DNA from: Oopsacas minuta
Lineage: Eukaryota; Animalia; Porifera
NCBI GenBank assembly: GCA_024704765.1
Contig: JAKMXF010000354.1
Coordinates: forward strand, 729,690 to 793,689
DNA: 64,000 nt
Reading direction: 5' to 3'
Shown here: piece after piece, positions 10,851 to 24,657 of the stretch
Numbering within the stretch: position 1 is the first letter of the stretch
How the letters are laid out: every line of letters starts with the position of its first letter
The notes under the pieces: model-generated
Databases searched by the model: none
The model's input: only the letters and a program-made list of their open reading frames with translations
What the model was told of the DNA's origin: nothing
Made by a program: the position numbers and the translations under genes

Positions 10851-13800
10851 ATGTCTTGGAAGTCTATAGCTTGGGGTGCAATCTCCCAGGCTCAGAAATC
10901 TATTGACACAGTACTGAGCAATGCTAATATGCCTGATGAAGGAGGTTATAATGATTTGGATGCGTTTTCTGATATATCTGGTTATGTGGGATCTACTCTC
11001 TACACCTCTACACCTGTTCCCCCGAAGGAACCCCAGATACAAGAGGATTCAGACCCCTCACCGTTACCTAGCGACCATTCTGACACTGAAATATGTTCTC
11101 TAAGTAATGAAGATAATATTTCTAATGATATGAATCAAGAGTTATCAGATTCTAACCAAATGTCTCAATCTACTGAGTTTAAACAAGTTGATCTTTTTTC
11201 TGTTCCCTCTCAAGAAGCCTCTCTAATAAATACTCCTGAACCTCTAGCTAATCATCAACTTGATGATGTTGATAATAGTAAGGAGCTACAAGATAATCCT
11301 GATCCTGTTGAAGTAGAGAATGCACTTGATAGTGATATACCAAGGATAACAGTAGACAACCAGCATTCCATGCTAACTACAGATAATGTATTAGTGCAAT
11401 CAAATGAAGCAGAAGAACCTTCTCATTCATTAACACAGCTAAGAGAAATGTTAAAAGTTAGAGAAGCTAAGCTATTTGAGCTACATGAGTCTTATGCTCA
11501 ACTTCACGATAAATACGAACTTATTAAAGAGAACGCACGTGCTGAAGTAGATCAGCTGTTAGCTGAGAAAGATGAAAAGGTAATAAATATTTGTTTGTTT
11601 CGTTTGTTTGTTACTTTGATATTATCATTATTAGATTCAATTATTGTTTCAAGAAGGAGAAAAACTCTCCAAGCAAGAAATGCAACAAAACAAGCATATT
11701 AGGAAGCAGAGGAATAATATTAAAGATCTAGAGTATAAGAATAAGGTATCAGCTGGTCGCCTCTCTGATATAGAGAAAGTTAATGCTACTCTTAAAGAAG
11801 ATAAAACTAGTTTGGAGATATCTGTCAAGAAGGAACAAGAAGTTAACAAGTTAGTAAAATAAGAATATATACGTTGTTATCCATTGAACATACATATATT
11901 CTATATTTTGGATTATCCACTGTCTCTCTATTCTTTAGGAAGTTGGAGACTGCATTTAGTCAGCAAGAGAAGGAACTACTCGTCTCAAAGAGAGAGCAAT
12001 CAAATATGTTAATTAAAATAGAAGAATTATCAGATTTAAATTCTAAATCTAATTCAGAAATCTCATCTCTCAGACATTCTACACTTACCAGTGAGATTAG
12101 TACTGAGAATGCTATTAAGAGTGCAGAGGATAGTTTTCAGCAACAAATGCAACAAACTCTTGCTGACCAAAACACCGCATTTATGGTGAGATTATATACT
12201 ATCTTATCTAGTTATTCGTAATGTATTTTGTTGTTACGATTTCCGCGTATTTAGTATAATTTCTTTCAACATAATCTATATGATGTGAAACAGCTTTACT
12301 AATATTCGCAATATTGTCGTTAGAACAATTGCTATCTGCAGAATAATGGTAGATAGTGTGTTTCACACAAATATTACTATTTTATTATAGAGCAGCTTTT
12401 GAGAAACATACGTATGCGGAGATTTATTCGCAAATTATACGTGACATTATTTTAGCAAATAAGTGTTGGGTTCCTGTCATTTGTTACAAAATACACAAAT
12501 TCACCTTTAATGGAGTAATTTTCACTCGAAGCAATATAATCTTACAGTTTACAAGGTTATAACGTGGTTATAATATATTAAAGTTTATTCTCTTGGATTA
12601 CTTCACATAAATTATTGTATTACGGCAGAATGGGTTTTACACAACTAAACTTCCTCTTGATTACAATAGCTACTATTCTGTATAATAGAGTAATTTAGTT
12701 TTGAGATATAAACTGACTCTATTAATTCTCTAATTTGTATGTGGTAATTGATATTGCAGATTGTGAATTACCTTGCTGCTGCTGCTGCTGTGGATTTATC
12801 CCTGATACTTGTTATTTCCTGTAGTTAGAAAGAAGAAGTTTGCAAGAGAAACTAAATGACTTGGAACAGACCTTAGTTTGGAAAGAACAATCAGCTTCTC
12901 GACAGGAAGACAGGTTTAAAGAAGAGATAGAAGAGTTAAGAGCTCATGTAGAGAGAGGAGAACAGAAGATACAACAATATTCTCAATCAATCAGTTCATC
13001 TACTCAACCTCTGTTAAGAGAGATAGAACATTTAAGGTATTTCTAGCTATTAGTATAGAGCTATTATATTATTATTCATCTTACTAGGACATCTCATAAT
13101 GATCAGTCACAGAACTGGTCGAGTGTAGAATCTAATCTGAGATCTGAGCTTACAAAGTCTCACCAAGAGAACGCTCGTTTGAAGGAAGATATCCATCTGG
13201 TTCAGGATGAGAAACAAATGTTAGAAATACGTATTACTTCTATGGACAAGAAACTGATGGGTCATAGAGAAGAACAGCAACATAATGTCCAACTATTGGA
13301 GTCCCTCAAGGCTGAGTTAGCTAAGAGCAAGCTCGAAGGACAGGACCAAGAGTCTAGGTTTAAATTATGGAAAGATTCTTATCAAGGAAGTATAGAACAG
13401 TTACAGGAAGAGAATAGGAAACTGCAAGCCGATTTACTGGAGAGGGAGAGAGAGGTTAATCTAACCACTGCATATACTAAACCATTCTTATCATCATTAG
13501 ATATTCATGTAGATCAGAATAATAGCATTAAGTCTACGGAGCATGAAGAGATTACGTTAGATCGAGCTAATAGCACTGCTTCTTTAAGTGATGCAGATCA
13601 ATACTCTGATACGGGTGTAGGTTCTCTATGGTCCTCTGCTACACAGGTAGATAGACTGCAACAGCTTTTACGACAGAAAGAAGGACAGATGTCTAGCTAT
13701 AAGCAGCAGACTATTAGACTCGAAAAGACATGTACTTTACTAACTGATGAATTAGCTAAACTAACTGCAACCAACCAGGATTTGAAAAACAAACTTGATG

Positions 13801-13985
13801 AAGTACCAAAATTAAAGAAACAGCTGTTACAACTTAACAAGCGACACGAAACTACATTAGAGATGTGTGGCGAGAAAATAGAGGAAAATGAAGAGCTTAA
13901 GTTGGATCTCAAAGATATTAAAGAAATGTACAAATCACAAACTGAGGAACTTGTTACTCTTTTGCAGAAAAATACGAACAGTTAG
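10851..13985 (+). CDS. TMF1: TATA element modulatory factor / golgin TMF1; exons about 10851-11579, 11635-11849, 11939-12185, 12825-13036, 13088-13985
   Basis: N-terminal MSWKSIAWGAISQAQKSIDTVL; EGEKLSKQ; STQPLLREIE; C-terminal HETTLEMCGEKIEENEELKLDLKDIKEMYKSQ (TMF TATA-binding domain). GT-AG junctions preserve frame. Confidence 0.9.
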
Positions 13986-14128
13986 CAATCTATATTATTC
14001 AATTTATCATTTTAATACTGGAATAATGATATATCTTAATATATGCTTGAGATTGGTTTCTACATCTGTATCAATACAATGTGTTATAATATTGAGAGAT
14101 TTATGTGTTATCGTGTACAAGCAGAGTT

Positions 14129-15148
14129 ATGGCTACTCTACTGAAGAGTTTGGTACCGGATATGCCGGATGAATATTCCGAGCCTGAACAGGCTCTGTTA
14201 CGGATATACGAACAGATGGAGGAGAAGGATATTAATAGGAGAGAATCTCTAGGAAGTGTAGGAGCTTTATCTCCTATTCATAGAGATGTAAGTCTATCTC
14301 CTCTCACCAAGAGAATGAAGAGTGAGAAAAGAGATAGCTTTCCAGCTACCACGCCTTTATCTCCCACTCTAGCAAAACAGTACGCTATGAAACAGATAGC
14401 TGATGGGAAGCTGGTGATTAATAAGGACACGAAGAGTAAAGGATTCAAAAAGACAAGGTCTCAGGAGAGACATGTAATCAATCGTCGTGAATCTTACACA
14501 GGACTTATGAGTCCTTGTTTCAGTCCTTACCTCCCTACTGCTCCCTCCCCTCTCTCCCAAGATACAACTGGTATGCATAAACATCTGTCAGACGAGTATA
14601 GGAAGAGTTTTATTAAGAAAGCTACCCTCACGAGTAGTTTTAGTTTTCCTTCACAAGAAATTATTGATAAGAATCAAATTGATGAAGAATGTCCCTTAGA
14701 TGATGAAATGTCAAATTCTGAAGTAGTTCCTCGCATAAAAAGTGATTTCTTACAAATCTCACTTGTACCTTCTCTGACCAGTTCCTCCAAACAAGTTCTC
14801 TCAAATGACATCATCAGACAAACATTTTCGAGTTACGGAAAAATAAAAACACTAATAGATAAAGATAGTGAAGAGGGCTTATACTTACTCTTCCAAGATC
14901 CTTCAATTAATCAACAAGTTGTTAATGATATGAACAATGCTCGTATCATGGGTATGGAGATTCTAGTTTGTATTCCTGACAGAGACAGAGCACCATCTGA
15001 ACTGACTGCTGTTCAGATATCTCAGCCATGGACTCGGCTAGCTGCTGGCATTACCGACACTACACCAGATGAAATTAATCCCAGTGGTACTTTAGATTCT
15101 AAACGGAGAGAAACGAATTTTACGTATAAGGATTCTCCATTCACTTAA
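14129..15148 (+). CDS. Uncharacterised protein: Ser/Pro-rich disordered N-terminus and a C-terminal RRM-like domain
   Basis: Long ORF (first ATG 14129). IIRQTFSSYGKIK...GLYLLFQD...VVNDMNNARIMGMEILV resembles an RRM; many SP/TP and RRxS motifs. Confidence 0.65.
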   Translation: MATLLKSLVPDMPDEYSEPEQALLRIYEQMEEKDINRRESLGSVGALSPIHRDVSLSPLTKRMKSEKRDSFPATTPLSPTLAKQYAMKQIADGKLVINKDTKSKGFKKTRSQERHVINRRESYTGLMSPCFSPYLPTAPSPLSQDTTGMHKHLSDEYRKSFIKKATLTSSFSFPSQEIIDKNQIDEECPLDDEMSNSEVVPRIKSDFLQISLVPSLTSSSKQVLSNDIIRQTFSSYGKIKTLIDKDSEEGLYLLFQDPSINQQVVNDMNNARIMGMEILVCIPDRDRAPSELTAVQISQPWTRLAAGITDTTPDEINPSGTLDSKRRETNFTYKDSPFT

Positions 15149-15323
15149 TTAATTAATTGGTGTTGATATTAACTAGTGAATATATTATTACGATTGTATT
15201 GTACAGACATGCAACTTTACTTAAAATAGTTTCATATAGCAACTGATAATACTTATAATACCTATAATATAGTAAATACAAGTAGGATATGTACACCAAT
15301 TTAAATAATACAAGTACTGTGAG

Positions 15324-16904
15324 TTATGTTGCCTCTTTTCTACACTTGCAAGTCAAGATCCTTTTCCAGAACTGTCTCACTTCCTTGTTTGTGACAGCAG
15401 CCAGGCCTCCTATACCCCATACACATGTAGAGAATCCTCCCAATATGCTTAACCAGGCCTGATAGATGGTTTGGTACTCAGGTGTACAACAATCAGCGGG
15501 GAATATAGAAATGCAGTACGTGTAGACATCTAGGTATTTTAAATATTTCTTCTCGTAGAACACATAGATAGACGCATCTAATAGTACTACCCAAATAGAT
15601 AGTGAGAATACAAGTGTGAAAATAGACAGCTGGAATACCCACTCAGTGCTGACTATAGTGGAAGTAGTTATTCTGGCTTGTTTGTATTTAAGGTGGACCA
15701 TTTTAACAACGATTATGACTATCATAGTTCCATTAAAGAGACAGAATACAAATCCGAGCATGTATAGAGATACAATTTCTATTTCTGATATTCCTGGCAG
15801 ACAGAATTCTGGTACATTATTTATTACGTATGCAGTCGATATGGTGCCTGTTACAGCAACCAGAATGAAATTAACTATTATAACGAGTAGAGGTAGTCCC
15901 CATGCTAGCACCAACTCAGTGGTATGAATAACATGAAGGTATTTGAAGAACCAGCGAGCTCCCTTTAGCGGGCTTAGCACGATTATTGACAGATTGCTTA
16001 TGGAGAATATATACCACATCAAAAAGGAGAGTAGTGCATAGTGTATCACTGTTCCTTGAACTAGGCAGAAAATAGTTGAATCTGCTCTCGATGTATCAAG
16101 GTTGTCATGTTTACAATAGTATTTTTTAGGCACAATGGCACCAGATAATATCGACAGAGCCTGGAGCAGGATTGTTATCATCATGTAGAAGTTTACTATT
16201 TTGGGAAATTTCCATAAATCTTTGTTAACCCAACTCAACATTCCTATTAGCGTAGCTACCAGTGTAAAGCTAGATCCTAGTATAGTAGTTACTCGGAATG
16301 CCCACCACATAGACCTGCCCCCTGGGGTGAATTCGAGACACTCAGGACCACAATTGGTGTTATTTGGCACGAAATCAACTGGACAGCTGGTTACTAATAC
16401 GGTACTGTTCGTGTAATTACTTGCTCTCAGTGCCGACACATACTTTGTGTACATCTCATATGCCTTTTCTATGTCTGTGCAATTCGATGTTTGTTGATAA
16501 GTTGTGTTGAAGGCTTCGTCTTCAGTAATTTTAGGCGCATCAGCTATTCCGTATACTAGAAACGCAGCTGTACTAAGATATCCCACCCACAGTATAGCCA
16601 GTATTATACCGGCTATGACGAAACTGAAATATAGTTTCATTTGTGATTTCATATATGTTTTGTTTTGTTTATGTTGTCTGGCGTTTAAATAGTTTTGTGT
16701 AGCATCAGATAACCCTCTCTTCCATTCCATTTCGTTGTTCTGTGTACTCGTCTTCGGTTCACTGTCTTCATCCTGATCTATACCTTTATACTCTTCAATC
16801 TCACACTTATCAGCCACTGAATCTAACTCTATGAAGCATTCTACCGTCATATCTTTTTCCAAGTGACTCTTTCGTTTGGAACCCTGCTTGCCTTTACGAC
16901 TCAT
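15324..16904 (-). CDS. Smoothened/Frizzled-like (class F) 7TM receptor A, no CRD, extra N-terminal TM; single exon
   Basis: Eight hydrophobic segments; pre-TM1 CPVDFVPNNTNCGPEC; WKFP at TM2; C-x-VQG at TM3; ECL2 CLP; ECL3 YxxC...CC; C-tail KEVRQFWKR aligns with Smoothened KATLLIWRR. Confidence 0.8.
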   Translation of the reverse strand: MSRKGKQGSKRKSHLEKDMTVECFIELDSVADKCEIEEYKGIDQDEDSEPKTSTQNNEMEWKRGLSDATQNYLNARQHKQNKTYMKSQMKLYFSFVIAGIILAILWVGYLSTAAFLVYGIADAPKITEDEAFNTTYQQTSNCTDIEKAYEMYTKYVSALRASNYTNSTVLVTSCPVDFVPNNTNCGPECLEFTPGGRSMWWAFRVTTILGSSFTLVATLIGMLSWVNKDLWKFPKIVNFYMMITILLQALSILSGAIVPKKYYCKHDNLDTSRADSTIFCLVQGTVIHYALLSFLMWYIFSISNLSIIVLSPLKGARWFFKYLHVIHTTELVLAWGLPLLVIIVNFILVAVTGTISTAYVINNVPEFCLPGISEIEIVSLYMLGFVFCLFNGTMIVIIVVKMVHLKYKQARITTSTIVSTEWVFQLSIFTLVFSLSIWVVLLDASIYVFYEKKYLKYLDVYTYCISIFPADCCTPEYQTIYQAWLSILGGFSTCVWGIGGLAAVTNKEVRQFWKRILTCKCRKEAT

Positions 16905-17479
16905 CTTTCCAAATGATTAATTTACATTTTCCCGGGTTCATACATATTTATACTTGTGATATTGTAGTTGCTTGGATCAGTGATATATGAGCTTTTTATG
17001 ATGTGCATACGTATCATCATAATTATTATATGATAATTGTAATTCAATGCCACGTGTGTTTCTGATAATAATTAGACGTTTACTTCCTTCATTGAGTTAA
17101 TATTTAGACATTTTCTAGAAAACCAGTAGCGATTCCTGGAGGTTATTACTTGTAATTAGCTATCAGTATGCTATATATTATCCAGATTATCATTCTATTA
17201 ATGTTCTGTTCTATAATTATCTTGAACTGTACGTATACAGTTTGATCGACTATTCCTATCGAATTTATCATATAGTGTCTCAAACAATTCAAAACGGAGT
17301 TTAATTATGTAATTTTTAATAATAAATACAAAATTTACAAAAGTTACTCCATATAGAATACAGTTTGGATCAGAAAATTATCATGCACAGTCTTAGAGAG
17401 CATATTTATTTTCCTATTGGAATTACGGGTATTTCCCTAGAATGATATTGACTTTGAATAATTTCCATCTCTGTCACCA

Positions 17480-19717
17480 CTACCAGCCATATAGTAATGG
17501 CTTTACAGGATTTTCTTTGTTATGACATACAGCATAAATACTACAGTCACTCCCAACTGCTAATCCAGTAGGATTCTTAGCCGTTCCTATGTCCACATCT
17601 CTAATGTTGTATATATTATTCGGTTGCGGTAGTATGGTGTAGACCTTGTGATCTGAGTAGGATGAGATGTATAACTGGTTTGTTTGGTCAATTGTTATGT
17701 ACATAGGATCTTGTATTTCCTTCAAGAGACACTTGATCCATTGGAAGTTGTTATCATAGAATACAACATCGTTATTAGCAGTTGATATGATATAAAATTC
17801 CTCATTTGTAATAGCTACATCAACAGGATGTTGTAATATATATTGATTAGAGAAACCCACTGCTATCATACAACCAGTTTTGAGGTTAACTAGCTGGATC
17901 CTGTGGTTGAACCTGTCTGTTACTACTAGCTGTTTCCTGGACTTGTTTATTGCTATTCCATGTGGACTTAAGAATTCACCGATGTCACTGCCATGCTTTC
18001 CGAATTTTTGTAGAAATGCGCCAATGTTTGTGAAACAGAATACAGCGTTAGCAATACGGTCACTAACATAGATAAAATCTTCAAAGCAGCATATACCGTG
18101 TGGACCAGCTAGTACGCCCTTTCCTATACACAATTCCAAACTAATTGCAAACTTAGGGTTTGGAAATGAAGGCAAATCAGGAGTACTTGGTCGCAATGGA
18201 GAACCAAATCTTGGCGTATAGTATCTTCCACTAGAGTGAATAGACTCCTCTTCTAATGGTGATTCTCTAAACTTAGTTATCTCTTCGGGGAATCCTCGAT
18301 AAATCGAGTACATTTCCACTTCACCTCTAGCACCCGATACTATATACAAGTTATCGCCTTGTATTGCAATTCCATTCCTCTCTCCTTTTCCTTCTAGATG
18401 GTTTACTGTTGGGTTTTTCATGAAAGAAATGTCACGAGAGACTGAAAAATGCCAATTTTTGTTAACTTTGATATTATTTACAATTAATCTGATTTTGTAT
18501 ACCCCCGCTTCTAAAACTTCCAATATGTGTATGTAAGAAGAATTACTCTTGTCAAATCTTTCTTTGCCCAAAGTTTCTTTAACAATTCTAACACTTCCCT
18601 CTCTCGGAATTTGTTTGTAAACTTCAACCGATATTATAGAATTTGTGCTAAATGCTACTACGTCATATTGATCAACCGTGTAAATACGCATTTCTAATTT
18701 CCCTCCTTCATAAAGCTGTTTGTCAGGAATAAAATCTATTTCTGTACGTTTTGGATCGATTATTCGTGCTTCAATCGATATTTTGTTTTCTTTTTTATCA
18801 AGTTCTCTGATAATCTTTATTATCCTTGGTGTCATTTCTAACAAGAATGTGACAAATGATGTCATACTCTGCTCTTCAAATTTCTCGAATGAGAGAGCTT
18901 TGAGAATATCCCCTCCTTTCTTAGGACAGAAACTTTTGATATCCATCATAGTCTTAACCGCTCGCATTACCTTGGCTAATTTCTTTTGATTCTCCGTATG
19001 ACAAGTTTCCAACTGCTCCTTTGTTTGTTGACAAGTTGTTTCGACATTTCTCTTAGCCTCGGTCTCTAATTCATCCAGCATCTCTCTTATTCTTGAAAAT
19101 CTGTTATCAATATCTTCGCTAACTTTCTCTTTCCATCTGTCAATCGTTGAGCTCAACTCTTCAAGTTTCTGCTGATGATTCCTGCCCTGTAATAAAAGCT
19201 CTTCACAATTGTCGAGGAAATTGTTTAACTGTTCAGAGACATCTCTTTCCTTTTGGTTCATAGTATCTTTATTTACTTTTGTCAGGAGATCTTGTAATTT
19301 CAAATCATTAGTCAGCTTAATGAAGGAGTGCTGATTTCCATTAAACATAGCACGATTGTGCAATTCTATATCTTGCTCACACCAAAATGAGGCACAAATA
19401 ATACAAAACAGAATATCTTTATCTTCTTGCTCTTCACATTGACAAATAACACAATTACTCTTTTCATTATTGGGCAATTGTGACTTGTGTAGATTCTGTA
19501 ATTGCTGTGCATATAGTTCAGTAAGTGGATGGGGAATTAAAGCTCCAGATTTAGTTGGTATTGTACAACATTTCTCAGGACCCTGTTTAAATGTTGCACC
19601 CTGTTTAAATGTTGCTATACAATCTCCGCAGATAACATGAAAGCACTCTAAGATGTAGCTTGTCTGCTTAATCGAGTTACAATTGATACATAGAAATATT
19701 TTTAATATTTCACTCAT
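17480..19717 (-). CDS. TRIM-NHL-like protein (degenerate RING, B-box, coiled coil, filamin-like, NHL repeats); single exon
   Basis: CINC...CFHVICGDC (RING-like); CVICQC...CIICASFWC...H (B-box); NHL repeats GPHGICC, FLSPHGIAIN...VTDRFNHRIQ, NPTGLAV. Confidence 0.85.
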   Translation of the reverse strand: MSEILKIFLCINCNSIKQTSYILECFHVICGDCIATFKQGATFKQGPEKCCTIPTKSGALIPHPLTELYAQQLQNLHKSQLPNNEKSNCVICQCEEQEDKDILFCIICASFWCEQDIELHNRAMFNGNQHSFIKLTNDLKLQDLLTKVNKDTMNQKERDVSEQLNNFLDNCEELLLQGRNHQQKLEELSSTIDRWKEKVSEDIDNRFSRIREMLDELETEAKRNVETTCQQTKEQLETCHTENQKKLAKVMRAVKTMMDIKSFCPKKGGDILKALSFEKFEEQSMTSFVTFLLEMTPRIIKIIRELDKKENKISIEARIIDPKRTEIDFIPDKQLYEGGKLEMRIYTVDQYDVVAFSTNSIISVEVYKQIPREGSVRIVKETLGKERFDKSNSSYIHILEVLEAGVYKIRLIVNNIKVNKNWHFSVSRDISFMKNPTVNHLEGKGERNGIAIQGDNLYIVSGARGEVEMYSIYRGFPEEITKFRESPLEEESIHSSGRYYTPRFGSPLRPSTPDLPSFPNPKFAISLELCIGKGVLAGPHGICCFEDFIYVSDRIANAVFCFTNIGAFLQKFGKHGSDIGEFLSPHGIAINKSRKQLVVTDRFNHRIQLVNLKTGCMIAVGFSNQYILQHPVDVAITNEEFYIISTANNDVVFYDNNFQWIKCLLKEIQDPMYITIDQTNQLYISSYSDHKVYTILPQPNNIYNIRDVDIGTAKNPTGLAVGSDCSIYAVCHNKENPVKPLLYGW
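19580..19615. repeat. Perfect 18-bp tandem duplication inside the RING region
   Basis: ACCCTGTTTAAATGTTGC x2, encoding ATFKQG-ATFKQG on the minus strand. Confidence 0.95.
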
Positions 19718-20427
19718 TTATTTTCCAAAATATATAAATGTATCATTTAGAATATTCTTATATTCTTATCAGTCGGCTAATTAGGTATACATTCTAGTAT
19801 AATACTCCTCTGGAATATCACGTTTCAGTCTTGCTATTCACATACTTTTTGATGGTATTTGTGTGTAAAACCCGATTGCAATATTTAAAACATGAAATCA
19901 CTTTGACAATATTTCAGTAGAAGCTCGCACTTGCAACCTTTGCAACATTCGTATTTGAATTACTACTCCCCTCCCCGTTCCAATTGACTAACAATATTTT
20001 TTTGGTATAAACATTATTAAATTGTGAACACAAAAGTAAATATGTAACGAAATACAATGGAACATTCCATTTCATGTTAGAACACAGTCATTAGGTCCTG
20101 GAAATTTGTATATCACAGGGTTTGTATGAACGAGAATCTACACTAAATGAATAAATAGCATATAGTTGCTACTGATCTAACGTGATAGGCGAATACGCAA
20201 TTATATAATCAAGTGATGGAATATGAACCATTCCGCAACAGAAAGTTCTATAATATATTTCACAATTCTAACGTATTCTGTCGCAATCTTGCTCCTAATG
20301 GTACCAGTTATGCAATGTCGTATAGATGATGCAATATGGCCAGCTCAGCGATCATATTCTAGTACTAGCATCAAGCATAAATACTTAGTCTTCTAAACAT
20401 TTATTGTTCTTAATTCCGTTTAAATTT

Positions 20428-21669
20428 ATGGCTTATTCAGTTCCTGCTTCGGATATTCTAACCGCTATTAATATAGCACGTACACAAGTCAGAGAGAATG
20501 TATCTCGAGGAGTCGAGTTCTTGCGGGAAAGGGAGAGAGTTCTGCTAAGTTATTTGCAGTGTCTTGAAGAAGCATACATTGAAGACAGAGCGCGGAGAGA
20601 CTTTGAACTGCAAGAACTTCTTATATCAAGAGAACAAAATCTTGAAATATTGAAATGCAACAAACATGAAAATACGTTGAAATATATTCTACAAGATTTA
20701 GATGATAGAATTACTGAACTCGATGTTAACAACGAACAACTACATTTGGAATGGGACTGTAAGTTAGAAAGCAGAATACACAGTGCTGGGAGATTCGTAT
20801 TGAATGGGGGAAGGACAATGTCATACCATTACAAGTCTAAACGAACTCCTGTACAAGTATTTGGACGTCATAATCAAGATAGATCGCAAGTAATGGAACA
20901 AGAATTTTTATACCCAAATGCAATCGCTATTGATCCGCTAACTAACTTTATTTATGTGTGTGATACAGGGAGAAACAGAATACAGGTATTTGATAGAACT
21001 TCTCAATTTCTATTTAAATTTAGCGAACTAATGAGCACACCATTTGGTATATGTATTCATGCTAACAGAGTATATGTAACTCAAATGATGTCAAATATTA
21101 TTACAGTGTATGGAGTCGGTGGTAAACTAATCGCATCAACTGAGAAAGGGGAGGGTAACAATTTCCAATTGAGCTCTCCTAAAGGTATAACAGTTTGCAA
21201 GATTACTGGATATATCTATGTATGTGATTACACTAATAAACGCATTATTATTTTGAACCAAGAACTCTGCTATCAATCTTCTATCCAATGTGATTCATTT
21301 CCTGATGACATCAAGCTAACAGAACTCGAAATATTCCTGTTAGAGTGTGCAGATCCCTGTATTTCAATATACAAGAGACATGGCATACACAGCCATCAGT
21401 TAGTAGGGCGGGTAATCCCATACGGTATGGGTAAACTGGTACTGGAATCCTTCAATTTTTTTCTTGACCATGAAGAGAATATTCTCATTACTGATACTAA
21501 GTCTCACAATGTTTTGGTATTTTCCAGGAGAGGAAGTCTTATTCACACGTTTGGTACTTTTGGACAAGCTGCTGGTGAATTTATTTGCCCCAAAGGGATT
21601 TGTGTAGATTCAGAAGGAAGAATTCTGGTTGCATCACAGAATCCAAATTATTGTATTCAATTCTTCTGA
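20428..21669 (+). CDS. Coiled-coil + NHL-repeat protein (TRIM-like, lacking RING and B-box); single exon
   Basis: NHL repeats FLYPNAIAIDP...YVCDTGRNRIQVF, LSSPKGITV, FICPKGICVDSEGRILV. First ATG at 20428. Confidence 0.85.
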   Translation: MAYSVPASDILTAINIARTQVRENVSRGVEFLRERERVLLSYLQCLEEAYIEDRARRDFELQELLISREQNLEILKCNKHENTLKYILQDLDDRITELDVNNEQLHLEWDCKLESRIHSAGRFVLNGGRTMSYHYKSKRTPVQVFGRHNQDRSQVMEQEFLYPNAIAIDPLTNFIYVCDTGRNRIQVFDRTSQFLFKFSELMSTPFGICIHANRVYVTQMMSNIITVYGVGGKLIASTEKGEGNNFQLSSPKGITVCKITGYIYVCDYTNKRIIILNQELCYQSSIQCDSFPDDIKLTELEIFLLECADPCISIYKRHGIHSHQLVGRVIPYGMGKLVLESFNFFLDHEENILITDTKSHNVLVFSRRGSLIHTFGTFGQAAGEFICPKGICVDSEGRILVASQNPNYCIQFF

Positions 21670-22034
21670 ATGGGAAATTAACAATAATAAAATATAGTAA
21701 TACGTATTCTAAGCACTTAGTCAACGAAATATTTACAATAATTATATAAATCAATATGCTAAAGATATTCTTAGTAATTCATTCACTGATTAGGGAATGA
21801 CCTTGCAATATATTAGCTCAAGAACTTCTGTATAGGCCAGAGCTCTGCAGCAGAACTAGCAATAAACATCCCATATTTATGTAAATTTCAAATATAAGAT
21901 CACTAATTCTAATTTTCCACCTACACAGAGTGGGCACATAACTGACATAAGGAAATACATTCGAATAGCATTTAGTTACTCCCTAACTATATTAATACTT
22001 ATATAGTTAATAATATTATATTTATTTGAGTTAG

Positions 22035-22604
22035 ATGATAGGATATTCTCTGATAATTCTAGTGATAGCATTTCTTACAGCCTGTCTGTCTGAGCTGACG
22101 TTATACTTCCTAGTGTATAGAACTGAACACTACAAGAAGTTAAAGCTAACGCTAGAGAGACAAGCTAAGAAATTGGAGAAGAAAAAGGAGTCTGCAGCAT
22201 GGACAGCTAAACCAGGAGTTAACCAGAAGAAAAAGTTGGAGAAGACAGAGGAGAAGCTTCAAGTTGATAACCGAGAGATAAATATGATCAAAACCAAATC
22301 TATGGTAATTCTAGGATTCACTTTCACTGCATTACTTGGGATGTTCAATCAGATATTTGATGCCGTGGTTGTAGCCAGACTGCCTTTCGAGCCAATACCG
22401 TTTATACAAGGGCTTACACATAGGAATTTAATGGGCAGTGATATGCAAGATTGTTCCTTCATTTTCCTTTACATACTAAGCACAATGGCTATCAGAGAGA
22501 ATTTACAGAAATTGACTGGATTTGGTCCCTCTAGAGCAGTGGGGAGATTGGGAGGAAGTATGTGGCAACCTTCAGGGAGTAACTCAGCTGGAAAATTATG
22601 GTGA
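22035..22604 (+). CDS. TMCO1: Calcium load-activated calcium channel TMCO1
   Basis: LVYRTEHYKKLK...KKLEKKKE; KSMVILGF; FDAVVVARLPFEP...GLTHRNLMG.D..DCSFIFLYIL. Confidence 0.95.
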   Translation: MIGYSLIILVIAFLTACLSELTLYFLVYRTEHYKKLKLTLERQAKKLEKKKESAAWTAKPGVNQKKKLEKTEEKLQVDNREINMIKTKSMVILGFTFTALLGMFNQIFDAVVVARLPFEPIPFIQGLTHRNLMGSDMQDCSFIFLYILSTMAIRENLQKLTGFGPSRAVGRLGGSMWQPSGSNSAGKLW

Positions 22605-23067
22605 ATGAATTTATGTTAGCTTAACACAGTACTGGAATATATTCAAATTGATAGGATTAATCTAATTATTACTTAATGCACCAGTTGCAAATATTTCCTA
22701 GTTACGTATCATGGTGATTGGTATTTTAATTATTCAATGATAAAAGCCCGGTCCATATATAGTTCCATCAGACTTGCTCTGTACGTAAGTAGTAGCACAG
22801 TCTATGGTTAATATTTAATCACAACAATTAATAATTAAGGAGATGAGCGCTACTATACACGTATTATATCTTGTCTACAAATTCTGATGTAATTAGTATA
22901 CTCTAGCATTCTAATGTCTAGAGTTACAGATATATTTTCCAATGCGTAGATATCTCCAATTACATCCTAATCAATGTAGGGTAACTCAATCTTAATAATT
23001 GTTTCTGCCTATACACAGAGATGGACTGCTACAAAACGAAATGCTTCATTATTTAAAGTAAAGTATA

Positions 23068-24657
23068 ATGTCTAGAAGAGTCAAGTTCAGTACCAGCCAG
23101 GAGATGAGTATTGAAGAGAAGCAGCAACAAACTAATGAGAAGAATAGAATTAGGAATAAGTTGTGGAGTTTAAGAATAGTCTTCTTTTTATTACTTATCT
23201 TTATTTGGCTTATGTACATCAGTCCTTTACTAGGAGGAATTGAAGGTCTCCTTGTAGGAGCTCTAGAAGTCATAAATCCTAGCGTTGACTATTATAATCG
23301 TAATAACACCAAACATATTGTGTATAATTCACAATGTAACTTAACGCATAAATACACAAAAAATTCTTATAACATTGATGCAAACAACACATTCAATGGT
23401 ACTTGTCCAATAGCATACATTTTCAATGGAACATACTGTGTACCTGAGTGTATCAGATGGAATCCAGGTGGAAACGTGTATTTCTGGATATACAGGATTA
23501 GTACTGTAGTAGGCTCAGCTATACAAATAGGTACTTGTATTATCTTCTTATCAGCCTGGCTACAAGCTGGACGCTCTGTGTGGAGATTTCCAGCTGTTAC
23601 TTCTTTCTACCTGATGATTACTATCCTCATTCAATCGCTGGCTGTGTTTTCTGGCTCACTTATACCAGAGAGGTTCTACTGCAGTAGCCAAGAGCTTGAT
23701 AGGTCCCGTGAAGCTAGTACTATAGCATGCAAGATACAGGGTGCTTTGTTCCAGTATGGTATATTCTCGTTCATGCTATGGTATCTATCATCATTCGTTA
23801 ATTTAGCGTTACTAGTCGCAATCCCCTTACACACTGCCAAGATAATGAAACACAGACATAAGATCCATGTTCTAGAATTCATAATCTGTTTCTTCTTTCC
23901 GATTATTGTTCTTTTGATTAGTTTCTTTGCAGACAGTGACGGACAAGGTTATAGAATTCTTAACGTCCCCGAGGTATGTCTTCCTAAAGACGCTTTCATA
24001 TTCATTACTATCTATCTACCAGGTATATTATTCTCTCTCATCCTTGGGAGCTTAGCTATGCTCATCTTGTATAAACTGTTTACTCAACAATTCGTGTCTA
24101 GTGCTGGAGCAGGGCTAAAGCGTACAATAATAACTGATCTAGCTATTCAGGTTATCCTCTTTCTAGTTTCGTTCGGATTCCTGATTTGGATAATTATGAT
24201 AGATTTTGTTGTTTATGAGAATCTAAAACTTCCCTATAAAGGATTCCTTGATGAGTACATAAGATGTATAACTGACTATCTCGGAAATGAAGCTTGTTGT
24301 AATGCTGTATTCCAAGAGTATTACGCTAGCTGGCTCAGTACATTGGCTGGATTCTGCAGTACTGTATGGGCAGCTCCCGCTCTGCTAGGCCTAGCTGGAC
24401 GAATCATTAGTCAGAAATGTTGCAGTTGTGTACGGGAAAGTCATTCTGAGAATCGCACAGCGATAACTACTACTAACCACGATAGGAGGAACGAATTAAT
24501 CAGAGGTCAAACTTTAAAAAGAGAAGAAAATAATGTTGGATATGGTAACCCTTACCCCGGGAAAATCGCTACCATTCTAACGGAAGATTCACCTAAAGTT
24601 AGTGACAAATTTAAGAAGTCGAATACTGTAGATGATTTCAACGAGGTGCATCACTGA
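23068..24657 (+). CDS. Smoothened/Frizzled-like 7TM receptor B, no CRD, extra N-terminal TM; paralog of 15324-16904
   Basis: Same architecture and motifs as receptor A: CPIAYIFNGTYCVPECIRWNPGG, WRFP, YC...SR..STIACKIQG, NVPEVCLP, EYIRC...CC, WLSTLAGFCSTVW. Confidence 0.8.
   Translation: MSRRVKFSTSQEMSIEEKQQQTNEKNRIRNKLWSLRIVFFLLLIFIWLMYISPLLGGIEGLLVGALEVINPSVDYYNRNNTKHIVYNSQCNLTHKYTKNSYNIDANNTFNGTCPIAYIFNGTYCVPECIRWNPGGNVYFWIYRISTVVGSAIQIGTCIIFLSAWLQAGRSVWRFPAVTSFYLMITILIQSLAVFSGSLIPERFYCSSQELDRSREASTIACKIQGALFQYGIFSFMLWYLSSFVNLALLVAIPLHTAKIMKHRHKIHVLEFIICFFFPIIVLLISFFADSDGQGYRILNVPEVCLPKDAFIFITIYLPGILFSLILGSLAMLILYKLFTQQFVSSAGAGLKRTIITDLAIQVILFLVSFGFLIWIIMIDFVVYENLKLPYKGFLDEYIRCITDYLGNEACCNAVFQEYYASWLSTLAGFCSTVWAAPALLGLAGRIISQKCCSCVRESHSENRTAITTTNHDRRNELIRGQTLKREENNVGYGNPYPGKIATILTEDSPKVSDKFKKSNTVDDFNEVHH

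Follow-up and report, generated by a model that had tools for sequence, protein, structure and literature searches.

The class F of G-protein-coupled receptors (GPCRs) usually comprises two animal types, Frizzled (FZD) and Smoothened (SMO), both built from an N-terminal cysteine-rich domain (CRD) and seven transmembrane (TM) helices. In this work, we have analysed a window of 64,000 nucleotides of the glass sponge Oopsacas minuta (assembly GCA_024704765.1, contig JAKMXF010000354.1, positions 729,690 to 793,689), where a single gene on the reverse strand (15324..16904) encodes a protein of 526 amino acids (aa), receptor A. Our preferred reading, which we regard as probable, is that receptor A is a functional, highly divergent class F homolog, belonging to an unnamed family of sponges and stony corals, in which the CRD is absent and an extra hydrophobic helix (TM0) serves as an N-in anchor. 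The two parts of this reading that seem very likely are the homology to class F and the absence of the CRD. Receptor A is neither a Frizzled nor a Smoothened as such, because the CRD and the residues of the activation switch are not found in it, and its predicted topology departs from the N-out plan with seven helices.

Taken alone, the receptor A protein matched no Pfam family and no chain of the Protein Data Bank (PDB), and its class F ancestry emerges from its relatives. An exhaustive profile search over 1.84 billion representatives recovered 70 of them at E ≤1e-3 (28 at E ≤1e-10). Among the 41 longer ones, nine match the Fz domain, eight the Frizzled membrane region and four the 7tm_2 family; the Pfam Frizzled threshold is passed by three CRD-bearing relatives (34-40 bits) and by one CRD-less coral protein (33 bits), and the Fz-domain matches of the CRD-bearing sponge members lie near threshold. 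A non-circular profile was built from 18 sequences without any Pfam hit of their own (receptor A, its orthologs, a neighbouring paralog named receptor B, and nine further close relatives). Searched against the PDB, this profile gave Smoothened in all of the top 13 rows (best E 1.8e-10), through matches covering the linker, TM1-3 and TM6 to helix 8, and the next class, the adhesion GPCRs, followed at E 2e-3. The profile of all 41 members found FZD6, FZD3 and SMO at E 5e-21 to 1e-19, and adhesion GPCRs at 2.6e-8, so that with both profiles SMO and FZD are ahead of the adhesion receptors by 23-40 bits. An earlier profile of nine sequences had yielded only sub-threshold SMO matches (E 0.5-5), which are not used as evidence. 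Finally, an hhalign comparison of the CRD-less clade of receptor A (22 sequences) with seven CRD-bearing sponge members, three of which pass the Pfam Frizzled threshold, gave a probability of 99.9% (E 1e-35, 355 columns) for a match running from the linker to helix 8.

The predicted structures point in the same direction. A first AlphaFold model of receptor A, based on nine sequences (pLDDT 60), gave a seven-helix (7TM) GPCR fold, with TM0 as an additional long helix, but could not tell class F from class B, with adhesion and secretin receptors interleaved with class F among its matches. Its successor, which covers aa 120-526 and draws on 56 family sequences (pLDDT 87.8, pTM 0.86), displays a linker β-hairpin (aa 178-188), seven helices, a hairpin in the second extracellular loop (ECL2), a TM6 of 48 residues and a helix 8. 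With this second model, all five class F representatives rank first, with about 40 more residues aligned, the linker included. In Foldseek, SMO and FZD alone fill ranks 1-33 (E 1e-9 to 7e-5), and the first other match is an adhesion GPCR (1.1e-4). In the ESM Atlas, a feature search placed Frizzled/Smoothened clusters first (0.93), and a shape search gave an amoebozoan Fsl-type cluster as the best match (TM 0.73), followed by an arthropod Frizzled-4 (0.70). A preliminary description of this DNA, made from its letters, had proposed a class F-derived receptor, and this ancestry is upheld by profiles, hhalign and structure searches, which all put SMO/FZD first; the best structural matches are not receptors of the secretin or cAMP types. 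Regarding which of the two is closer, the profile of close relatives favours SMO, while the broad profile ties FZD with SMO and so do the folds, whose Z scores are equal and do not say which is nearer to receptor A.

The elements of the gene, with positions in the window, are as follows.

15324..16904 (-), receptor A gene: a single-exon open reading frame (ORF) with an ATG start, 526 aa plus stop
16647..16904 (-), hydrophilic, charged N-terminus (aa 1-86), probably cytosolic by the Lys+Arg bias of the family; its ratio of nonsynonymous to synonymous divergence (dN/dS) is 0.39
16542..16646 (-), TM0 (aa 87-121), a hydrophobic helix of 35 residues, putative N-in signal anchor by hydropathy, model and charge bias
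16386..16541 (-), ectodomain stalk (aa 122-173), with two predicted helices, four of the five ectodomain sequons (N133, N141, N163, N166), one Cys and no CRD
16317..16385 (-), class F linker (aa 174-196), C174-x10-C185-x3-C189 with sequon N181 and the predicted β-hairpin of aa 178-188
15393..16316 (-), seven-helix bundle (aa 197-504), from the predicted model and alignment: TM1 197-226, TM2 236-257, TM3 278-310, TM4 323-352, TM5 373-412, TM6 420-467, TM7 483-504
loops of the bundle: ECL2 hairpin (aa 359-370) with C368; third extracellular loop (ECL3) with C464, C472 and C473
15324..15392 (-), helix 8 (K507-x5-W513) and a short tail with C519 and C521 (aa 505-526 plus stop), from the model and the SMO alignment

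All the elements listed by the preliminary description (the ORF, a charged N-terminus, TM0, sequons, the C-x10-C-x3-C linker, seven TMs and the KEVRQFWKR tail) are indeed present, although the N-terminus, given there as about 90 aa, is a hydrophilic, charged segment of 86. Hydropathy alone finds eight hydrophobic segments, TM0 at aa 87-121 and seven others within aa 197-505. The five sequons (N133, N141, N163, N166 and N181) all fall between TM0 and TM1, the cysteines of the linker and bundle are 174, 185, 189 (exactly C-x10-C-x3-C), 264, 280, 368, 464, 472 and 473, and the C-terminal tail reads NKEVRQFWKR (aa 506-515). The structural alignment begins at the first linker Cys (model residue 53-55), opposite SMO residue 192-197, and SMO residue 193 is where the match of the linker starts.

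Signature positions were mapped by alignment of hidden Markov models (HMMs) to SMO and counted over 41 family rows, using as SMO reference columns the Arg in TMLRLGIF (6.32) and the Trp before TKAT (7.55).

C174, C185, C189 and C264, cysteines of the linker and the first extracellular loop (ECL1): Cys in 40-41 of 41 rows
C280 and C368, TM3 and ECL2 pair: both in 22 rows, neither in 17, mixed in two
C464 and C473, ECL3 pair: both in 29 rows, neither in eight, the first only in four
W513, Trp of helix 8: conserved in 26 of 41 rows
Q425, column of SMO Arg6.32: Arg or Lys in 29 of 41 rows, Gln in every member of the receptor A/B clade
T505, column of SMO Trp7.55: no family row has Trp

The eight structural cysteines that align to those of SMO, corresponding to the four class F disulfides, are all kept in receptor A, where the bonds are predicted. 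The linker cluster and the ECL3 cysteines had been taken as class F marks from the start, and their positions do align to SMO cysteines. C280 and C368 covary across the family, as expected of a disulfide pair. The TM3-ECL2 disulfide is among the most conserved features of GPCRs; within the CRD-less clade, 14 of 22 members lack both of its cysteines. At helix 8, K507-E-V-R-Q-F-W513 aligns without gaps to the K-A-T-x-x-x-W of SMO. The preliminary description had counted this motif as a hallmark, which is right for the SMO-like spacing and the Trp but not for the Thr, since the motif here is K-E-V-x-x-x-W; the column of K507 holds Lys or Arg in 16 of 41 family rows. As aligned, then, the cysteine framework is that of class F, and the described activation switch is not conserved.

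The absence of a CRD was also claimed beforehand, and it is supported at several levels. There is no Pfam match to the Fz domain in the receptor A protein, and the stretch between TM0 and the linker has 52 residues with a single Cys. When the CRDs of seven relatives were compared with the 64-kb window by tblastn, nothing was found (all E >0.7), including in the spacer upstream of the gene. The 1.36 kb located 5′ of the ortholog at the syntenic locus of a related assembly hold no open stretch longer than 81 codons, at most three Cys, and no Cys-rich open stretch. The 166-aa ectodomain of a relative (P0071) was considered as a hidden CRD and rejected, as it has only three Cys and no Fz match. 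FZD and SMO carry CRDs, as do fungal and amoebozoan homologs according to the literature (PMC12716839), and loss of the CRD in the clade of receptor A is therefore the parsimonious reading, on a tree that is unrooted.

The second peculiarity of receptor A is found in front of the ectodomain. Canonical class F receptors have cleaved signal peptides and follow an N-out plan with seven TMs. Here, a hydrophilic N-terminus of 86 aa is followed by a TM0 of 35 residues, and the N-terminal membrane anchor of the preliminary description thus stands, as an internal helix. The same arrangement occurs in the 35 family members scored, with or without CRD: a hydrophilic stretch of 6-98 residues, then a hydrophobic segment of 19-44 residues. 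Summed over these members, the 15 residues before TM0 contain 123 Lys+Arg and the 15 residues after it 42, and sequons cluster C-terminal to TM0; this charge bias and the placement of the sequons suggest an N-terminus inside the cell and an ectodomain outside. A Trp within TM0 (W106) is kept in 20 of the 22 clade members and in 21 of 41 rows family-wide. A downstream start at M85 or M89, which would turn TM0 into a signal peptide, was rejected: two relatives (P0004 and P0008) and receptor B have no Met beside TM0, so that in these three it is not an N-terminal signal peptide, and the upstream frame is conserved. TM0 is likely to be kept in the mature receptor A.

Judged by its sequence, receptor A is a real, constrained and intact gene. 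The frame has a stop five codons 5′ of the ATG, and a word-based search found seven orthologs in ENA assemblies (51-69% identity, 511-544 aa), which are collinear with receptor A from the first Met to the end and keep the whole architecture. The ortholog alignment shows conserved blocks in the N-terminus (MSRK, TVECF(L/I)EL and RGLSxATQNYL), and all eight orthologs, like the paralog receptor B, begin with M-S. Gene order is shared between positions 13179-24657 of the window and the syntenic locus (L001:495-9632 of ENA assembly ERZ25071281): a TMF-like gene, a 345-aa unknown gene, receptor A, NHL, EMC3/TMCO1 and receptor B(-like); the ortholog of receptor A is likewise one single ORF. Against this ortholog dN/dS is about 0.10, a rough figure given the saturation of dS (about 2.2). 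The 7TM part has the lowest dN (0.16), which rises to 0.32 in TM0 and the ectodomain and to 0.38 in the N-terminal segment, whose dN/dS is 0.39. Directly 5′ of the start codon of receptor A there is an AG (...GGAAAG|ATG, 16905-16910 (-)), which is not kept in the ortholog (...ATCGAA|ATG).

Receptor A is not an isolated case. A TM0 behind a probably cytosolic N-terminus is common to about 40 full-length relatives, whose general plan (hydrophilic N-terminus, TM0, either a CRD or a short stalk, a C-x(n)-C-x3-C linker and 7TM) fits receptor A. Among 30 sequence clusters looked up, 13 carry the name of an organism, and these are sponges and stony corals: Amphimedon queenslandica (two members), Oscarella pearsei (five), Oscarella lobularis (two), Corticium candelabrum, Orbicella faveolata and Desmophyllum pertusum. 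TM0-bearing relatives with a CRD occur in Amphimedon and Oscarella, and those without it in Corticium and corals; TM0 is thus not tied to CRD loss. Public names of the members are “uncharacterized”, “hypothetical”, “FZ domain-containing” and, in one case, “adhesion GPCR G7-like”. The last one was given by NCBI to one isoform of an Oscarella lobularis pair (P0027 and P0102; XP_065829460 and XP_065829459), and here a weak 7tm_2 match has probably misled the annotation, because the profile and the tree place the protein in the class F-like family. In the literature searched, we met no account of class F receptors in which a cytosolic segment and one more helix are added at the N-terminus, nor of the family itself. 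The suggestion of an undescribed sponge receptor family holds as to the lack of a description but not as to sponges only, given that corals have members.

A quick maximum-likelihood tree of 40 members, unrooted, splits into two halves. One is a clade of 22 rows (99% SH-aLRT) made only of sequences from ENA assemblies, with no CRD detectable by Pfam, which holds receptors A and B. The other one, with 18 rows, contains the named proteins of sponges and corals, some with a CRD and others lacking it. On this tree the CRD state changes at least three times. Receptor B is encoded in the same window:

23068-24657 (+), receptor B: a paralog of 529 aa with the same plan of TM0, linker and 7TM and 30% identity to receptor A

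Its N-terminus has only 27 aa, it lacks the helix-8 Trp, and its hydrophilic C-terminal tail differs from that of receptor A and is about 80 residues longer. The ortholog of receptor B (P0009) and a third lineage (P0011) form the sister group to the lineage of receptor A.

How firmly a class F receptor with an N-in anchor can be accepted depends on the readings that compete with it. One of them concerns only TM0, which could be an internal signal sequence cut by signal peptidase, leaving an ordinary class F-like receptor of seven TMs with a short free N-terminus and discarding the N-terminal peptide. The small residues that follow TM0 (YGIADA) could be a cleavage site, and cleaved signal peptides are the rule among canonical class F receptors. 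However, the length of TM0 and its distance from the N-terminus across the family are unlike those of cleaved signal peptides, its Trp is conserved, and an N-terminal segment with conserved blocks and a dN/dS of 0.39 would be unexpected in a discarded piece; we consider cleavage unlikely, though it is the strongest of the competitors. Much more remote is an incomplete gene model, in which an upstream exon with a Frizzled CRD and a signal peptide would be spliced on to give a conventional receptor. CRD-bearing relatives do exist in other sponges, and the sequencing runs that hold the locus look genomic and hence are silent on splicing. Yet such an exon, placed ahead of a cytosolic N-terminus, would place the CRD in the cytoplasm, on the wrong face of the membrane. 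There is, besides, an in-frame stop five codons before the ATG and a spacer of 575 bp with stops in all frames, no CRD match exists in the window, and orthologs and paralog share the M-S start. The next upstream gene, of NHL/B-box type, is absent at the syntenic ortholog, and the DNA upstream of this ortholog has no Cys-rich open stretch either. With no coding sequence for a CRD in the window, in the spacer or at the ortholog, this explanation is extremely improbable.

The two remaining alternatives question the class and the function, and both are very improbable. Receptor A could belong to another class of GPCRs (adhesion/secretin 7tm_2 or cAMP-receptor-like), its likeness to class F being only that of a common 7TM fold. 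Two relatives pass the 7tm_2 threshold, one has the G7-like name given by NCBI, and the first, low-confidence model mixed adhesion and secretin receptors with class F. Against this stand the class F ranking of the confident model and of Foldseek, the lead of SMO/FZD in the profile scores, a linker and four-disulfide cysteine pattern that matches SMO position by position, and the lack of any 7tm_2, GAIN/GPS or HRM match of the receptor A protein in Pfam. Alternatively, receptor A could be a decaying or non-signalling paralog of a lineage-specific expansion, open by chance, as the many paralogs of the family and the loss of the R6.32/W7.55 residues might suggest; but the frame is intact in eight orthologs at 51-69% identity, the gene order is conserved, all eight structural cysteines are retained, and the low dN/dS is accompanied by strongest constraint in the 7TM part. 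Our preferred reading, a divergent and functional class F homolog with an N-in TM0, also has facts that weigh against it. Receptor A by itself has no Pfam Frizzled match even at E 10, and two family members score better on 7tm_2. In Z, class F folds lead those of class A by only about 2-3 units. Neither residue of the class F switch pair is retained, Gln425 standing in the R6.32 column and Thr505 in the W7.55 column, and the CRD is absent in a family for which some authors hold it as defining (PMC10445921). The four sequencing runs that hold the locus derive from one sample, with library adaptors present and contigs spanning intergenic DNA; they look genomic and thus have no bearing on expression or on the 5′ end. 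The retention of TM0, the ligand, the coupling to G proteins and the disulfide bonds of receptor A are all things that we infer.

A mechanism can be proposed on these grounds. Most likely, TM0 would act as an N-in signal anchor, with both protein ends in the cytoplasm and the ectodomain tethered on both sides. What would be exposed outside the cell in the A/B clade is a glycosylated stalk of about 50 residues, the linker hairpin and loops joined through the four disulfides of class F, while the conserved peptide of the N-terminus would be kept by TM0 at the cytoplasmic face of the receptor. Smoothened has a ligand site inside its 7TM bundle and couples to Gi. By analogy, the 7TM/loop core of receptor A may be where a ligand is sensed, in the manner of the 7TM site of Smoothened, and the receptor may signal via heterotrimeric G proteins, a coupling for which the solved G-protein complexes of SMO and FZD among the matches serve as precedents. 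This combination of a core pocket and a G-protein output is offered tentatively, with somewhat less than even chances, as the most economical one given that CRD, Wnt and Dishevelled are all missing: in the Oopsacas minuta genome wnt, wntless, dishevelled and frizzled A have been reported absent, with one frizzled B and eight G-alpha genes present (PMC10280926).

Among known systems, Smoothened (e.g. PDB 4jkv and 6xbl) is the best profile match, tied with FZD in structure. Both proteins share the linker hairpin, the four extracellular disulfide positions, a long TM6 and, at helix 8, an identically spaced K-x5-W. Receptor A differs from Smoothened in lacking a CRD, in having TM0 and a cytosolic N-terminus, in keeping only about 20 residues after helix 8, and in showing Thr for Trp7.55 and Gln for Arg6.32. 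Unlike the Frizzleds (FZD1-10 and the sponge FzdA/FzdB), it has a TM0, no CRD and no exact K-T-x-x-x-W, and the Pfam Frizzled scores of even its best relatives are 33-40 bits. The recognised Frizzled of this genome, FzdB, is a different gene (PMC10280926), and the sole Frizzled in the published gene lists (PMC10280926, PMC5684314). The nearest described analogues are the Fsc receptors of Dictyostelium, likened to receptor A by their description and by the amoebozoan shape match. The Fsl/Fsc proteins (Fsc for “sans CRD”) are divergent class F-like 7TM receptors with repeated CRD loss, often below Pfam thresholds and mostly without KTxxxW (PMC10445921); they are amoebozoan and not animal, and no N-terminal cytosolic segment with TM0 is described for them (PMC10445921). 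In sponges, Krishnan et al. 2014 reported 8-9 Frizzled-like sequences from Amphimedon, one of them basal to Smoothened, most of which were discarded as fragmentary (PMC4302439). The Amphimedon relatives XP_019850181 and XP_019859819 (“FZ domain-containing protein”) may be among them, but TM0, the CRD-less clade and the coral members are not described in the surveys consulted.

In comparison with the two usual types of class F, this family adds an eighth helix in front, which would leave the N-terminus in the cytoplasm; the CRD is present in demosponges and homoscleromorphs, and absent in the clade of receptor A and in corals. Surveys based on HMM thresholds, such as that of 2025 on the GPCRs of the closest relatives of animals, where Oopsacas was sampled, would not count receptor A, because it has no Pfam Frizzled match even at a permissive cutoff. 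The finding bears on how a glass sponge patterns itself without Wnt, Wntless and Dishevelled. One Frizzled figures in the published list, yet several more receptors of class F type are present. It also supplies a natural experiment: a class F core with no CRD and no Trp7.55, many paralogs without the TM3-ECL2 disulfide, and a predicted doubly tethered ectodomain. The R/K6.32-W7.55 pair is the described molecular activation switch of class F. A broader scenario, possible although rather doubtful, is that animals had from early on, beside Frizzled and Smoothened, a third lineage of class F, formed by the TM0-bearing proteins, which the common ancestor of sponges and cnidarians would have possessed and bilaterians would lack. 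In the Wnt-less glass sponges this lineage would have dispensed with the CRD and given rise to an expanded set of Wnt-independent receptors having their two ends inside, which would read ligands via the 7TM core and might have taken over developmental or environmental signalling.

Some minor observations refer to the locus itself. In one of the four sequencing runs, the summed contig depth between 14000 and 19900 is about 550-2260 over 14000-16950 and 148 from 16955 on. The run has many short contigs and several single-base differences, and may represent another type of library or mixed individuals; adaptor-bearing contigs of this run end at 15333 and 16900, adjoining the ends of the receptor A ORF. 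The surroundings of the gene are the following:

16905..17479 (-), spacer 5′ of receptor A: 575 bp, AT-rich, with stops in the three frames and without CRD-like coding potential
17480-19717 (-), NHL/B-box gene of 745 aa, the next same-strand gene 5′ of receptor A
20404-21669 (+), a second NHL-repeat gene, which together with the previous one lies between receptors A and B
14105-15148 (+), Ser/Pro-rich ORF of 347 aa, convergent with the 3′ end of receptor A, from which it is separated by a gap of 175 bp

The 745-aa NHL protein combines a Cys-rich, B-box-like region at its N-terminus with a coiled coil, in a TRIM-NHL-like arrangement; its gene is not present at the syntenic locus (L001) of the related assembly, pointing to a lineage-specific insertion or loss. 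As for the Ser/Pro-rich ORF, it has no Pfam match, and its counterpart at the syntenic locus is the 345-aa gene mentioned above.

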